Shown here: positions 50,461 through 56,821 of the stretch, in pieces
How the letters are laid out: the number at the start of each line of letters is the position of its first letter
Numbering within the stretch: the stretch's first letter is position 1
Source: Laetmonice hystrix
Lineage: Eukaryota
NCBI GenBank assembly: GCA_965235115.1
Contig: OZ249437.1
Span: 35,898,001 to 35,962,000, forward strand
Reading direction: 5' to 3'
Length of the DNA stretch: 64,000 bases
Translations under genes and position numbers: made by a program
The notes under the pieces: model-generated
What the model saw: only the letters and a program-made list of their open reading frames with translations
The model's database searches: none
What the model was told of the DNA's origin: nothing

Positions 50461-51404
50461 GGACCTGCATTTCGGAGACTCAGGTCCGTCGGCCTGCATT
50501 CCAGGACTTGAAAAGCTGTAAACGTCAAGGTTGAAACGAAAATATAAGTACTTTAAAATACTGTGCTTTATTTTTTAACTATTCCACTAAAAATTCAAAA
50601 CCATTTCATTTCGCTGTCTTCCTCGCTGATCACTAAAAAGTAAAGAAAACAATTACGTTTTGAATGAAAGATTACCATACAGATTTCTACATATTTTTAA
50701 TATATTTTTGTGTCGACTTTCTTCAAGAAACAACCCTTTGTCTCTTGTCTGCTGTTGTGTGAACTGAATCCCACTCCTATTGTTTGCATTAGTCCAAAAT
50801 GATGCCTGTATCGTACCGTTAAAACCAATCCAATTAGAAGTGTCAACCACCTCAGGTCCATATGCACCAGGGCGGAACAACCTGGTGTCATCACATTGTA
50901 AAACATGTATATTTAACCATTACCTTTGAAGATACACAATGACACAGGACTGGACACGACCAACAACCCCGCCACCACGCAAGTGGTTCTCCCGAAATAA
51001 CTCCTCTTATGTTGAGGCATTGTCTAAGCCGGGAAATGACATGTTAATTCCCTTTAACCTCTACATCTTTCAGTTGTACAAGTACATGTATTTTCTAGTA
51101 TTTTCATGTTATGGAGAAATAAGCCAGTTCATTAAGTATACCTCCACAAAGTTTATGTTTCATATATTAAAATTATACGAGACTTACCTTGGTACAAGTT
51201 GAAGTAGAATTATAATTTTACCGAGGACAACACGTAGTGTTGTAGGGAATATCTGAGAAGGAGAGCGCGTGCGCGGGGAGACGGCAGACTTGAACTAAGT
51301 GCGAGTTGAAGCAAAGAATCCCCCTAACTGTACGAGACTGACCTTGTGTAAGTGTCCAAGTCCCCAGTATCAACCCTTTGAGACCTGGGGTGGGTGGGAA
51401 AGGG

Positions 51405-51539
51405 CAGATATTCCCTACAACACTACGTGTTGTCCTCGGTAAAATTATAATTCTACTTCAACTTGTACCAAGGTAAGTCTCGTATAATTTTAATATTTTA
51501 CCTCGGACAACACTGACGTGTTTCCGGAAATATCCGAGA
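51405..51539. repeat. DIRS internal complementary region (ICR)
   Basis: 51405-51494 is the exact reverse complement of 51166-51255 (90 nt). 51495-51539 is the exact reverse complement of 56451-56495 (45 nt). Together they spell the predicted circle junction. Confidence 0.95.
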
Positions 51540-51621
51540 CTTTTAGAGCTTCTTTGCGTCTTAACTCGCTTACGGGCATGACAACAAGACAAATGTATTA
51601 CTGCATACAGAACACACTTTA

Positions 51622-52893
51622 TTATGTCAGTGCTTCATTTAACAATCTCTTCGCAACCTCTTGGTCTTCATCAATATCCTTATTATAAAACAGGGCGAAT
51701 GACCGTACATTTCGCCATCTAGCCTGTTTCAAAATCTGTCCTATCGAAGCTCCCAATCTATGGGCCGCAGACGCTGACGCCCCTCTAGTAGAGTGGGATT
51801 TATACACCGAAATATCAATTCCCGCCATGCTAAGCACAGCTAGCGTCCACCTCGCTAAACTGTCTCTCGATATAGCCCTATGTGGCGCTCGATAACTTAA
51901 TAACAATTGACTCTCCCCTTTCCTGAATCCTCTCGTTTTTTCCAAATACTGTCTCAGTGTTCTAACCACACAGACTGTGGGACACTTGTCAAACGATTGG
52001 AGGATAATTGAGTCCAACCTATCCCCTAATCTGTTATGTTTCAGTAAACATTTCATCTTAAACACTACCTTATGCTTTGATTTAACGAGTCCATCTATAT
52101 TTAAATTTACAACGGTTTGGCCCCTCTGTGAGGTCACCAGTAACAGCAAAACTGCAAGTTTTAAGGATAGATATTTTAAGGATAAATCCTCATTGCGACC
52201 CCATTGCTTGAACAACTTAAAAACCTTTTTGACATCCCAAAAAGAAGAATAACGAGGTTTTGGCGGGTTCCTTTCATAAACCCCTTTAATTAGCCTACAC
52301 ACCAACGGGTGTTTCCCAATACCATAGCCGTCCATATCCGGTAATACAACCGCTAAAGCCGATCTGGCAGCATTCAGGGCCCCATAACCCAGGCCCCTGT
52401 CTGCTAAACCTCTAAGAAAAGCACACACTTGGGGTAAGGTTGGCTCCAACAAAGTGACTTTATATTGGCAACAGTAGGTAGCCCATTTCTTTAAATAAGT
52501 TGTGTAAAGTTTCTTGGTGGAGTTTCTCCATGATGCCATAATGAGTTCAACTGTTTTCTTATCAAAACCAGCTTTTAACAACTTTTTTCCCAAAAAAGGT
52601 ATGCCACCAAGGGGCAGCTGTGTAACTTTTCTTTGTTTCGTGGCTCCCCGTTTGGTATTAGATTGTGTGGCCTGCTTCTGAAGTACAGTCGTCGTGACGC
52701 CGCCTTCTGGACTGTTGCAAACCACGGCTGCGTCGGCCACCACGGAGTGATCAGGATTCCTCGTGTTCCGTCCGCCAACATCTTGCTGGCGACCCGGCCT
52801 ACTAGACTGAAAGGCGGAAAAATATACATAAAACCTTCTGACCAGTCTAACGTGAACGCATCTGTTTTCCATGCTTCGGGATCTGGTCTCCAT
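51622..52893 (-). CDS. DIRS tyrosine recombinase (YR), 423 aa, open
   Basis: N-terminal SAM-like helix STKKLYTTYLKKWATYC and catalytic residues R (TSQRGQ), K (LKHNR), H-x-x-R (SHSTRG), W (ARW) and Y (ALFY). The first 319 nt overlap the MT-coding frame. Confidence 0.95.
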   Translation of the reverse strand: METRSRSMENRCVHVRLVRRFYVYFSAFQSSRPGRQQDVGGRNTRNPDHSVVADAAVVCNSPEGGVTTTVLQKQATQSNTKRGATKQRKVTQLPLGGIPFLGKKLLKAGFDKKTVELIMASWRNSTKKLYTTYLKKWATYCCQYKVTLLEPTLPQVCAFLRGLADRGLGYGALNAARSALAVVLPDMDGYGIGKHPLVCRLIKGVYERNPPKPRYSSFWDVKKVFKLFKQWGRNEDLSLKYLSLKLAVLLLLVTSQRGQTVVNLNIDGLVKSKHKVVFKMKCLLKHNRLGDRLDSIILQSFDKCPTVCVVRTLRQYLEKTRGFRKGESQLLLSYRAPHRAISRDSLARWTLAVLSMAGIDISVYKSHSTRGASASAAHRLGASIGQILKQARWRNVRSFALFYNKDIDEDQEVAKRLLNEALT

Positions 52894-53759
52894 GATACAA
52901 ATTTATCTAGTTTTTTATTCAACCTTGACGCAAACAAGTCTACATCTGGCTTTCCAAAGGCCTTACATATTCTATCAAATATCTGTTTACCGATTTCCCA
53001 TTCCGTTTCGTCCATAAATTTTCGGGAATGTAAATCTGCGATCTGATTATTAATACCAGGTATGAACGCAATCGTAATCCAATTGTGTGCCTGCTCTGCC
53101 CAGTTCCAAATCTCCCGGGCTACCCAATTGCACTGAGGCGACCTTACACCGCCCATATTGTCTACATACGCTACCGCTGTGGTATTATCTGTTAACACCT
53201 TCACGTGTACCCTCGTTTCATGACACAAACTCTTCAGTCCATACAATATTGCTAGTAACTCTAAAACGTTAATGTGTTGCCGACTTTCGTCAGCTGACCA
53301 CCGGCCCCCAGTCTCCACTGAGTCCGTGTGAGCCCCCCATCCCAGCATCGAGGCATCAGTGCTGACCTCCATGGTGATTTTAGGGGGTCTTATACTTTTA
53401 ACTGCAGCTGGTAGTGCAGATAGCCACCACCTAATGTCTTCCTTTGCCCTGTCTGTGAGCACCATGGTATGATCAAAATTCCCCTTCGCCTCTCGGAGGG
53501 CCATATTTTTGTCAATCTCTAAAAATTTTATATGTGCAGCTCCGTACTGTACTCCCGAGGAATACGCTACCATCAAACCAATAAGTCCAGCTACCTCGCG
53601 TATAACCACACGTTTGCTTTGTAGGACTTGTAATGATGCTCTGCAAAATTTGTCCTTTTTATCTTGTGTAAGACTAACCGTCATCGAGGATGTGTCCAAA
53701 CTGAACCCCAGAAAGGTCAACTTCTGCGTTGGGGTCAATACTGACTTGTCAGGATGCAC
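52575..53759 (-). CDS. DIRS pol, C-terminal part: RT thumb, RNase H and DNA N6-adenine methyltransferase-like domain
   Basis: HPDKS..TFLGF; RNase H STDASMLGWG / HINVLELLAI / TDNTTAVAYV / IADLHSR; MT-like DLFASRLN...YIFPPF...PWWPTQPWF. Joined to the RT ORF across a +1 frameshift at the A8 run 53760-53767. Confidence 0.92.
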   Translation of the reverse strand: MHPDKSVLTPTQKLTFLGFSLDTSSMTVSLTQDKKDKFCRASLQVLQSKRVVIREVAGLIGLMVAYSSGVQYGAAHIKFLEIDKNMALREAKGNFDHTMVLTDRAKEDIRWWLSALPAAVKSIRPPKITMEVSTDASMLGWGAHTDSVETGGRWSADESRQHINVLELLAILYGLKSLCHETRVHVKVLTDNTTAVAYVDNMGGVRSPQCNWVAREIWNWAEQAHNWITIAFIPGINNQIADLHSRKFMDETEWEIGKQIFDRICKAFGKPDVDLFASRLNKKLDKFVSWRPDPEAWKTDAFTLDWSEGFMYIFPPFSLVGRVASKMLADGTRGILITPWWPTQPWFATVQKAASRRLYFRSRPHNLIPNGEPRNKEKLHSCPLVAYLFWEKSC

Positions 53760-54480
53760 AAAAAAAACCCAAAGTTTGAAATAAATTACACAATGAGTTT
53801 ATGGAATCCCGACATTCCTGAAAAGAATCTGCAATAACGAAAGAATCATCAATATAGGGGAAAGCCTCGTTACCTGCCTCCCTCAAATGTGCAAATGCTG
53901 GGCTCAGAATTTTCGTAAAAATCCTCGGGGCACAGGCTAGACCATTTGGCATACCTACATATTCATAAATAACATTTTCAAACCTGAACCTTAAAAACTT
54001 CCTATGTTCTTCACGTATATTCACAGTGTAATACGCGTCTGATAAATCTACTGAACCGAGCCAGGCCCCTGGTCTAATTAAGTCCAAAGCAGTCTGTAAT
54101 GAGGTCATCTTAAAATGTTCATATTGGACAAACTTATTTAAGTTAGTCAAATCCAAAATCAGTCTATGGCCCACTGGCTTGGGTCGTAGAAAAATATTCG
54201 AAATAAATTGCCCATCCAGTGGCTGTGCTGGTCTGATGACACCTTTTTTAACCAACTTGTTAAGTTCTATCCTCAGACAGTGACGTTCTGCTTCACATAT
54301 TCTAAATGGGTGCGGTTCCCTTTCCTGTACAGGCTCCCCTTCCATAAAGGGAATACGTACTCCCTGTACCATAGAAAGAATCCAGGGGTCCCTCGACAGT
54401 TTCAGCCACTCACGCACACATCTAGCAATGTTTCCTGCCTTAAACTCAAGATCAGGCAAAGCGTCAACAGAGGTACCCAC
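53749..54480 (-). CDS. DIRS pol, N-terminal part: reverse transcriptase (frame stays open upstream to about 54590 without an ATG)
   Basis: FISNIFLRPKP..RLILDLTNLNKFV..HFKM..GSVDLSDAYY..GMPNGLACAPRIFTK..YIDD. Confidence 0.93.
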   Translation of the reverse strand: MGTSVDALPDLEFKAGNIARCVREWLKLSRDPWILSMVQGVRIPFMEGEPVQEREPHPFRICEAERHCLRIELNKLVKKGVIRPAQPLDGQFISNIFLRPKPVGHRLILDLTNLNKFVQYEHFKMTSLQTALDLIRPGAWLGSVDLSDAYYTVNIREEHRKFLRFRFENVIYEYVGMPNGLACAPRIFTKILSPAFAHLREAGNEAFPYIDDSFVIADSFQECRDSINSLCNLFQTLGFFCAS

Positions 54481-54485
54481 TTGCT

Positions 54486-55778
54486 CTAATTCCGGGTCCC
54501 CTTCCGCTGAAAATCCGGACGTGGAGCCGGGGGAGCGCCTACTGCCGCAGTAGGTGGCTGCCGCTGCCTTGACCTCGCCCTGGGGTCATACTGTTGTCCT
54601 GGCTGTCGATATGCATAGTGCATGCCATATGGATAGGCTGGCCTCATGTGCTGGTACCCAAATGACCTTTGGTACGGCGCTACCCGATAGGTTGGGTATG
54701 TCACCATACCGCGTGTCCGGCCTCTCCCGGACCCTACCTGAGCAGGAAGTCTTACCTTTCCTGCCGACTGCTTCATCATCTTACCAGACAATTTCTGTGC
54801 CGCCTCACAATGTTTGGCCGCTTCCTCGATATTTCCTCCAAAAAGCCACTCCGGCGACTCCCCTGAGAATTTGCTCAACGCTTTAGCATAGACACCTTGC
54901 ATGCCCGATCTAATGTTCTCTTTCCGTTTCGACTTCAGGCCATTGCTTACCAAGGCTAACGCCTTAATGGCATCTAGTGCATTATCAGCTAGATTATCCA
55001 GTCCTGTGTCTGATTGTCCCCTGTCAATCATTAAAGCTGCTATCGGTGTTAATGCTGACAAGGCTGCAGCAACTCCCGCCTGAAGCTTTTTTATAGTAGA
55101 ATCGGTGGATCTTGCCTGTGGATTCATCCCAGTATAAATTTCCATTTCCACCTGTGGTATAGTTAAATGAGGAATGTTCTCTGGTGGAGGATACTTTGAT
55201 GCAATATCCTCTAATTCTGTCCCTCCGGGTGAAATAAAACAGTTTTCCACAATTTCCGCTAAGCTGGGGTGAACTGGTTCGCCCTTTCTGGAGGCTTCTC
55301 CTACTTTTTCTTTATTCTGTTCAATTAGCATCGCCAATTTCCCTTTCGCAAGCTGTATAGGTACTTCCCGAGTTGGAGCTGGAGAGGATTCTGCACGTGG
55401 CCTATCATCTGATGAGTAGGAACTGTGAAGGTCAGGCCCCATCCCGCCTGCTGTATCTTCCGACTCATACCCACTCCAGGTATCCCACTCCGGGAAAAGC
55501 GTCGGCATAGGCATAGGCGGCGGCGCAAAAGGTAACCCGTACTGAAACGGGTACGGAGCGTGAAAAAACTCAGATGGCTGAGTTTCTTCCATTTGTATTG
55601 GCTGTGCCTGGGTCACAGTCTGCGGCTCCTCTGCAGTACTTAGGGAGGCTGAAGCGGACGTAGTTGGTCCTTGCTCCAATTCTTCATTTTTCTTATTTCT
55701 TGTCTTCGCCTGCTTTTTCTCCTTTGTAGACCCTTCTACAGCAGTGTCTGCAACCTTTCTTCCCTCTTTCTCGGGCAT
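54486..55778 (-). CDS. DIRS gag-like ORF1 (probable start ATG 55778, MPEKEGRK...)
   Basis: Open frame of about 430 codons with an acidic/proline-rich N-terminal half, a helical core (PHLTIPQVEMEIY...KLQAGVAAALSAL) and an R/G/Y/P-rich tail. The track start at 55826 runs through a polypyrimidine splice acceptor. Confidence 0.85.
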   Translation of the reverse strand: MPEKEGRKVADTAVEGSTKEKKQAKTRNKKNEELEQGPTTSASASLSTAEEPQTVTQAQPIQMEETQPSEFFHAPYPFQYGLPFAPPPMPMPTLFPEWDTWSGYESEDTAGGMGPDLHSSYSSDDRPRAESSPAPTREVPIQLAKGKLAMLIEQNKEKVGEASRKGEPVHPSLAEIVENCFISPGGTELEDIASKYPPPENIPHLTIPQVEMEIYTGMNPQARSTDSTIKKLQAGVAAALSALTPIAALMIDRGQSDTGLDNLADNALDAIKALALVSNGLKSKRKENIRSGMQGVYAKALSKFSGESPEWLFGGNIEEAAKHCEAAQKLSGKMMKQSAGKVRLPAQVGSGRGRTRGMVTYPTYRVAPYQRSFGYQHMRPAYPYGMHYAYRQPGQQYDPRARSRQRQPPTAAVGAPPAPRPDFQRKGTRN

Positions 55779-55780
55779 AT

Positions 55781-56349
55781 CTGTCCGGAAGAAAAGAAAG
55801 GAAATAAATACTCGGCCTATAACCAAGCCAACTCAAAACCAAGTTAAAAATACCATTCGTATTAATCAATACAGAGTGTTGACAAACCCAACCGACCGTG
55901 ACGAACCACCGAACCAATTCACACCTGGGTCGGTTTGACCGGTATGGCACACGACACGGTCGTATTGAAATTGACCAACTCCTTGTCAAGACACTGTGAC
56001 TAAACCTGAGACACCCAGCGGGTGTTCTCGTCACGGCAAAAAAGATTTATTGAGTTAATAGTTTATCCCGGACCACGTCCGTCTATAAAACTCATCAAAA
56101 TGCCGTAAAGGCTTACAAATGAACGAAGGCAGCGCCAACGTTCCGTGACAAAATGCCTTACAGGCTTACATGTGAACGAAGGCAGCGCCAACGTTCCGTG
56201 ACCTATCTGAGACAACGCCAGCGGGAAGCCTCGTCACGACAAATTCTTAGGGTTTAAAACAATAAACCAGACCACGTCTGGTTAATAAACCCGTATGCCT
56301 TAATGGCTTAACTCCAAAAGGAGTAAAACTTCAACCAAGGAACACTCAC
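55781..56349 (-). other. Candidate spliceosomal intron in the DIRS 5' leader
   Basis: Donor CAG|GTGAGT at 56349. Acceptor tttatttcctttcttttcttccggacAG at 55781, 2 nt before the gag ATG. Confidence 0.7.
56108..56202. repeat. About 54-bp direct repeat inside the DIRS leader intron
   Basis: ggcttaca..tgaacgaaggcagcgccaacgttccgtgac occurs twice. Confidence 0.85.
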
Positions 56350-56821
56350 CTGTAACGCATTCAAAAACCAGCGCGAGTGCAGTTCAAACACGTCCGCCCC
56401 CGGCAAACACTACACACGAAACTGCCGTCTCCCCGCGCACGCGCTCTCCTTCTCGGATATTTCCGGAAACACGTCAGTGTTGTCCGAGGTAAAATCATAT
56501 ATATAATTGTGTGTAAAGCTGTTAAGGATGCAGCAGTATGGTACATGTTATGTTGTGAAGTTAGCAACCATCATTATGACCAACAGTATGTTATAAATCC
56601 ATATCTTCATATTTTAGTATAAAAAGACTTTAGAAGTGTCTCTGAACATCAGTCAGTGACAACCTTACTGTATATATTCCGCCAGGACAATATTTCCTAA
56701 TACCAGAAGATGTTATGACGGTCAATTGATTTATTATTTTTATTATCATTTCTTAACCATCGTGTTTGGTATCATAATAAAGGAAATAGCAGTATGAACA
56801 ATTAGAACACCATATTTTAGG

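Follow-up and report, generated by a model that had tools for sequence, protein, structure and literature searches.

A candidate programmed -1 ribosomal frameshift cassette at the gag/pol overlap of a DIRS1-like retrotransposon

The element and its gag/pol junction

The window analysed here is a stretch of 64,000 nucleotides (nt) from the Laetmonice hystrix assembly GCA_965235115.1 (contig OZ249437.1, positions 35,898,001 to 35,962,000 of the forward strand). Its minus strand carries a DIRS1-like tyrosine-recombinase retrotransposon of 5,332 nt (51164-56495), and the overlap between the gag and pol open reading frames (ORFs) of this element most likely forms a programmed -1 ribosomal frameshift cassette. 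The anatomy of the cassette, its phase, its conservation and its covariation are directly established, and it is from them that we infer frameshifting itself. The junction comprises the following features.

51164-56495, minus strand: whole DIRS1-like element, with boundaries that match the ends of identity between copies
54486-55826, minus strand: gag ORF, open from 55826, first ATG at 55778, stop TAG at 54488-54486
53749-54585, minus strand: first piece of pol, in the -1 frame, encoding the N-terminal part of the reverse transcriptase (RT) up to the YIDD region (RVT_1, E = 1.3e-13)
54510-54516, minus strand: slippery heptamer G_GAU_UUU in gag phase, with P-site codon GAU and A-site codon UUU
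54503-54509, minus strand: 7-nt spacer (CAGCGGA) between heptamer and stem
54469-54502, minus strand: predicted stimulatory hairpin, 5' arm 54502-54493, loop 54492-54480, 3' arm 54479-54469

The 3' end of gag reads CCG GAT TTT CAG CGG AAG GGG ACC CGG AAT TAG, and the UUU of the heptamer is the eighth codon before the stop. An earlier examination of the letters alone (the sequence-only reading) had placed G_GAU_UUU at 54516-54510, in gag phase and eight codons before the stop, and had described a pol without ATG at its start whose frame is open for about 35 codons over the gag 3' end. Both observations hold. The pol frame is -1 to gag and open from 54585, a point 35 codons upstream of the GTG at 54480; its overlap with gag measures 97 nt. 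Its first AUG falls inside the conserved pol N-terminal motif ..DPWILSMVQG.., and pol therefore has no start of its own. The junction thus shows the layout of a -1 cassette: a downstream ORF in the -1 frame that overlaps the upstream one and lacks a usable start, a slippery heptamer in phase, and a predicted hairpin which, after a 7-nt spacer, lies within the 5-9 nt downstream where a 3' structure is expected. The hairpin has 10 base pairs (bp), a bulged A54474 and a 13-nt loop containing the gag stop (-17.5 kcal/mol). The sequence-only reading had pointed to this imperfect pairing, which it put about 8 nt downstream.

According to the mechanism that we propose, most ribosomes translating gag would stop at the UAG at 54488-54486 and yield Gag. 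In a minority, a pause would come when GAU occupies the P site and UUU the A site, because the hairpin, 7 nt away on the 3' side, would obstruct the mRNA entry channel. Both tRNAs could then slip back by one base, with the A-site tRNA-Phe re-pairing perfectly with UUU and the P-site tRNA-Asp moving from GAU to GGA. A Gag-Pol fusion would result from continued translation in the pol frame (..PRPDF-SAEGDPELEQVG..). The codons that follow such a slip are GGA TTT TCA GCG GAA..., which is the pol frame, as the sequence-only reading had worked out.

Several points weigh against this reading. In the window copy alone, neither the heptamer class nor the fold is beyond chance: N_NNU_UUY occurs in phase at 26 of the 1537 codon positions of the element ORFs (about 0.54 expected per 32-codon overlap), and the fold has z = -1.08, with 27 of 200 shuffles equally good. 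The fold proposed for the 3' region is predicted as a hairpin, but on the window alone it is no better than shuffles. Moreover, G_GAU_UUU is not a canonical X_XXY_YYZ heptamer; sister families carry the canonical G_GGU_UUU or A_AAU_UUU at this place. Peptides are also conserved in both frames around the site (DF.RKG in gag and S.EG in pol), so that protein constraint could explain some of the nucleotide conservation. The narrower motif GGAUUUY is found in phase only once among the element ORFs, at 54516-54510. Rfam gave no family matching the junction site. A single copy does not exceed chance, yet the comparative data carry the case beyond it.

Conservation of the junction across families and assemblies

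The genome has 627 Mb and more than 1100 candidate DIRS pol loci, and about 45 loci from some 25 families were looked at. Twelve families, whose pol is 40-65% identical to that of the window, have a long gag with pol at -1 to it and an in-phase heptamer 8-9 codons before the gag stop; with the other assemblies included, this distance is usually 8-10 codons. The heptamers at this position are listed below.

G_GAU_UUU: window, L020, L041, L055, L064
G_GAU_UUC: L047, L081
G_GUU_UUU: L053
G_GGU_UUU: L063
A_AAU_UUU: L043
U_AAU_UUU: L061/L080
G_AUU_UUU: L044

In three more families the overlap contains a canonical heptamer at another position (A_AAA_AAC, U_UUU_UUU and G_GGA_AAC). Other assemblies were searched with the intact pol of the sister family L020 as query, which gave ten loci from eight other samples. 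Nine of them have pol at -1 and, within the overlap, a slippery heptamer in phase; in the tenth (L084) gag and pol are fused in one ORF.

G_GAU_UUU, 8 codons before the gag stop: L082
G_GAU_UUU, with an Asn-rich insertion before the stop: L086
G_GGU_UUU: L087, L096
A_AAA_AAC in a 43-nt overlap: L088, a Tara Oceans contig
U_UUU_UUA: L083, L094
U_UUU_UUG, where the pol frame opens: L095
G_AAU_UUU or C_CCA_AAG: L085

The Asn-rich, low-complexity insertion of the Logan contig (L086:577-707) is located in the hairpin loop and places the gag stop 31 codons from G_GAU_UUU. Apparent 4-nt stop/start overlaps in L094-L096, considered as restart signals, proved to be an artefact of a gene caller that accepts TTG and GTG starts.

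The sequence-only reading had proposed to look in related copies and families for the heptamer, its phase and the downstream stem. All three are kept across DIRS families of 40-65% pol identity and in other assemblies, with +1 and fused exceptions. Where the heptamer varies, its replacements are canonical slippery heptamers, and the stem shows compensatory changes.

The P-site codon is informative in this respect. Its third base is U in 16 of 16 loci while the codon encodes D, N, G, V or I. Multiplying the codon-usage expectations gives 1.4e-7 for this outcome, with loci treated as independent; this value and the other p-values given here ignore the shared ancestry of the families and so overstate independence, a further point against our interpretation. 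The amino-acid changes at this codon nevertheless imply repeated substitution with U retained. In several families the position of a slip is also delimited by stops in the pol frame. In L061/L080 the first three nucleotides of the heptamer are themselves a pol-frame TAA, with an overlap of only 25 nt, and the pol frame of L047, L055 and L063 becomes open 3 codons ahead of the heptamer. With stops at or just before the heptamer, a slip must fall between it and the gag stop, and in these families the heptamer is the sole slippery sequence of that interval.

These data bear on the view that the heptamer and its neighbours are conserved by protein constraint only, acting on the DF.RKG peptide of Gag or on the pol N-terminus, and that pol is made by non-AUG initiation, by reinitiation or from a processed mRNA. 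The peptide conservation in both frames, the non-significant fold of the single copy and the clearly fused or +1 layouts of some DIRS families are in its favour. However, constraint on the protein does not account for a U kept at the P-site third base despite a varying amino acid, for stem arms that covary where the peptides differ, or for pol-frame stops at or just before the heptamer in several families. Alternative initiation is opposed by the many AUGs in gag, which exclude leaky scanning, and by the lack of an AUG in pol before the conserved domain. We regard this explanation as distinctly unlikely.

Slippage of the polymerase on the T run, shifting the frame in a fraction of the mRNAs with no part played by ribosomes, seems extremely improbable. 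A U run is present and reaches 6 nt in family F (L044), but most families have only 4 U. Runs known for polymerase slippage are longer than this. Moreover, transcriptional slippage leaves the conserved hairpin at 5-9-nt spacing unexplained.

The hairpin gives the second line of evidence for ribosomal frameshifting. Nearly all families with a homologous site have a predicted hairpin 3-10 nt past the heptamer, with the gag stop in its loop, and the loop-proximal base pairs vary between families. The stem of L043 is perfect over 12 bp (z = -4.95). When junction segments were compared with control segments taken every 10 nt through the same loci, the junction was more stable in 14 of 14 families (rank p 0.008-0.235; Fisher 8e-8).

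Pairing was counted on two alignments. In the ungapped MAFFT alignment A2 (7 families), 80.5% of cells pair, as against 39-55% with the partners slid; 6 of the 11 pairs change on both sides, and the observed values were reached by 1-2 of 500 shuffles. RNAalifold independently predicts the same helix. In the model-fitted alignment A4 (12 sequences), 83.5% of cells are paired, a value reached by none of 500 shuffles. These figures carry caveats: the seven sequences of A2 were picked for in-register stems, A4 leans towards the model and the sequences are related. The 15-sequence MAFFT alignment A1 was left out of the pair counts because the stems of L053, L064 and L061 are out of register in it, and alignment A3 was discarded for containing chance matches.

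When the 627-Mb genome was scanned with a covariance model of the cassette, 23 of the 150 candidates scored were matches. Nearly all of the 23 are directly upstream of a listed DIRS pol locus, with three at places beyond the reach of that comparison, and new matches include C11:25290036, C3:2200538 and C5:31086416. The model missed the most diverged junctions (L064 and L061 were not matched at the junction, and L053 only at E = 0.7).

The Gag-Pol fusion by frameshifting that the sequence-only reading put forward is thus supported by conservation across families and by covariation.

Other features of the element, a splice-like motif and exceptional families

The remaining features of the window element are listed here.

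54475-54483, minus strand: 5'-splice-site-like motif CAA/GTGGGT, overlapping the loop end and the 3' arm of the hairpin
53760-53767, minus strand: T8 run at which the pol frame breaks, the remaining pol being in the +1 frame
52575-53759, minus strand: second piece of pol, with the C-terminal part of RT, RNase H and a Dam-like methyltransferase
51622-52893, minus strand: putative tyrosine recombinase (YR) ORF, assigned by homology, overlapping the second pol piece by 319 nt and at -1 to it

Inverted terminal repeats (ITRs) of 51 nt and 90% identity were found at 51237-51287 and 56422-56472. There are two internal complementary regions (ICRs), one of 92 nt (51405-51496, complementary to 51164-51255, 100%) and one of 45 nt (51495-51539, complementary to 56451-56495, 100%). 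They abut at 51495/51496 and match both termini. The element therefore combines ITRs with two adjoining ICRs that fit its ends, as in DIRS1-like elements, and its pol has the RT/RNase H plus Dam-like methyltransferase composition of this group. The Dam match (E = 2.6e-5) scores 24.4 bits, under the curated 28.1, and the RNase H-type matches are weak. The gag ORF has no Pfam match. The recombinase ORF has no Pfam match of its own either; it is 63-67% identical to the homologous ORF in L082, L084 and L087. PF00589 was detected in the recombinase homologues of L084, L094 and L095, with a weak match in L082 and L087.

The genome harbors four young copies that are at least 99.8% identical, with identity stopping exactly at the element ends, and these are therefore independent, recent insertions. 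One of them (L091, G000:C6:18818159-18826488) has an insertion of about 725 nt in the RT coding region, at a place matching window position ~54063. Two older copies, about 90-94% identical, are inverted on another chromosome. These two (L092 and L093, G000:C7, about 9.34 and 9.46 Mb) are near-identical, in opposite orientation and ~118 kb apart, which suggests an inverted segmental duplication; two separate insertions are less likely.

The splice-like motif raises another interpretation of the junction. A CAG/GTGAGT-type motif is present just after the gag stop in most DIRS families, including L020, L043, L047, L055, L059, L049 and L079, and it is far commoner at this spot than elsewhere in the loci, as scored with a rough matrix of our own. 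The functional element could accordingly be a 5' splice donor, with the hairpin incidental or a regulator of the donor, and splicing might serve recombinase expression. The score far above background at this spot in most families agrees with this, as does the occurrence of the motif in fused gag-pol families that need no frameshift (L049 and L079) and of a similar one, CAG/GTATGT, in another codon phase in L071. However, these scores come from that same rough matrix, made for this analysis, the GT is GC in two families (L041 and L044) and the window motif, with A at position -1, is a weak one. The loci revealed neither a conserved acceptor nor any spliced (intron-less) copy; the abundant deletion family C has microhomology instead of GT..AG at its boundaries. 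A donor at the start of pol supplies no start to it and so does not replace frameshifting. For these reasons we hold it unlikely that the junction acts as a splice donor instead of a frameshift site.

The pol/recombinase junction has a comparable layout. Across the families examined, which include L016, L041, L044, L082, L084 and L087, the recombinase ORF is -1 to pol with an overlap of 229-427 nt, and in 5 of 10 families the recombinase frame lacks an AUG within this overlap. In most of them an in-phase C_CUU_UUY precedes the pol stop by 5-6 codons (1 codon in L044); in L087 a canonical G_GGA_AAA does so by 3 codons. In the window, an in-phase C_CUU_UUY and a G_GAA_AAA were observed at 52584-52599 (minus strand), a few codons before the pol stop. 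Two successive -1 frameshifts on one genomic RNA might conceivably give Gag, Gag-Pol and Gag-Pol-YR. Since the hairpin embeds the splice-site-like motif, the same fold could also decide between frameshifting on unspliced RNA and use of the donor. We consider this extended scheme rather doubtful.

Some families do not fit the frameshift cassette and count against a general role for it. L050/52/54, L059/62 and L073-75 have pol at +1 to gag; gag and pol form a single ORF in L049, L071, L079 and L084; L060 has an in-frame stop and L058 lacks the heptamer. The cassette thus characterizes a large clade without being universal among DIRS elements. In L052 and L059 the local sequence is still cassette-like, displaced by one base.

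The break of the pol frame inside RT, at the T8 run (53760-53767), is a further difficulty, which the sequence-only reading had not noticed. The four young copies all share it, while the two older ones stay in one frame across this spot. The T8 run carries in-phase G_GGU_UUU and U_UUU_UUU heptamers. The interrupted pol could possibly mean a truncated fusion complemented by proteins supplied in trans, a bypass by slippage on the T8 run, or a (systematic) miscount in the assembly. Movement with proteins supplied in trans was shown for Dictyostelium DIRS-1 (PMC7192593).

A deletion derivative of family B (L020) was found at no fewer than 16 loci of G000 (at least L023-L035 and L037-L039). It has lost ~130 nt, bounded by microhomology, and with them the frameshift cassette and the pol N-terminus. 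Its pol is +1 to gag, yet many copies retain ORFs of about 660 codons. This derivative is probably non-autonomous.

Comparison with known systems

Gag-pol -1 frameshifting is well established in retroviruses and Ty3/gypsy-type LTR (long terminal repeat) retrotransposons, for example at the U_UUU_UUA and stem-loop of human immunodeficiency virus 1 (HIV-1). The DIRS junction resembles these systems in having gag upstream and pol at -1 with no start of its own. A further resemblance is the heptamer, placed a few codons ahead of the gag stop, with a spacer and a 3' hairpin behind it, from which a minor Gag-Pol product would be expected. The RT and RNase H of DIRS elements are related to the RT of Ty3/gypsy (PMC3266345). 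Unlike retroviruses and Ty3/gypsy elements, the window element is a tyrosine-recombinase (DIRS1-like) retrotransposon with ITRs and ICRs, and has neither a protease nor a DDE integrase. The site itself also differs from retroviral ones: its heptamer is the non-canonical G_GAU_UUU, and a simple covarying hairpin, whose loop holds the gag stop, is the predicted stimulator.

DIRS1-like elements are described in the literature with gag, RT/RNase H/methyltransferase and YR ORFs, ITRs, adjoining ICRs and a long pol/YR overlap (Piednoel et al. 2011, PMC3266345; Malicki et al. 2020, PMC7192593), and the window element shares these three ORFs, its YR being assigned by homology, as well as the ITRs, the ICRs and the pol/YR overlap. 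These two papers contain no statement on how DIRS pol is translated. A Dictyostelium DIRS-1 paper reached through a search on DIRS splicing does not treat the translation of the ORFs, and a full-text literature search, with the founding DIRS papers of Goodwin and Poulter outside its reach, found no paper on frameshifting in DIRS. The sequence-only reading had called the expression of DIRS pol unsettled, which is consistent with this result.

DIRS elements are abundant in many animals, fungi and protists. For one large animal DIRS1 clade, the 60-nt cassette of heptamer, spacer and hairpin offers a directly testable answer on pol expression, and it may serve as an annotation rule for joining DIRS gag and pol. 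The -1, +1 and fused layouts within one genome are in addition a natural experiment on the ease with which a Gag:Pol strategy can change.

The closest parallels for the heptamer are in RNA viruses, as the sequence-only reading had noted for GGAUUUY. PMC3111606 cites GGAUUUU as an efficient -1 site in the dianthovirus red clover necrotic mosaic virus (RCNMV) and as proposed for mesoniviruses. It is the main site in umbraviruses, and umbraviruses and umbra-like viruses use GGAUUUU, GGGUUUU and AAAUUUU interchangeably (PMC13098196, table 2). The DIRS families share this heptamer with RCNMV, with umbraviruses such as pea enation mosaic virus 2 (PEMV2), with mesoniviruses and with insect-specific flaviviruses (GGAUUUY), and the interchange set with umbraviruses and umbra-like viruses. 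As in DIRS, the viral sites have a structure about 5-8 nt downstream (PMC3111606). The viral sites differ in serving replicase or overlapping genes, in relying in some cases on long-distance interactions or pseudoknots, and in having no sequence homology to DIRS, where the 0-frame stop is 7 codons downstream, inside the hairpin loop. The DIRS1 clade would thus provide a eukaryotic retrotransposon example of a site family otherwise known from RNA viruses. Gag-pol -1 frameshifting and the heptamer itself are already known; what the DIRS1-clade cassette adds to them is the piece concerning the translation of pol.

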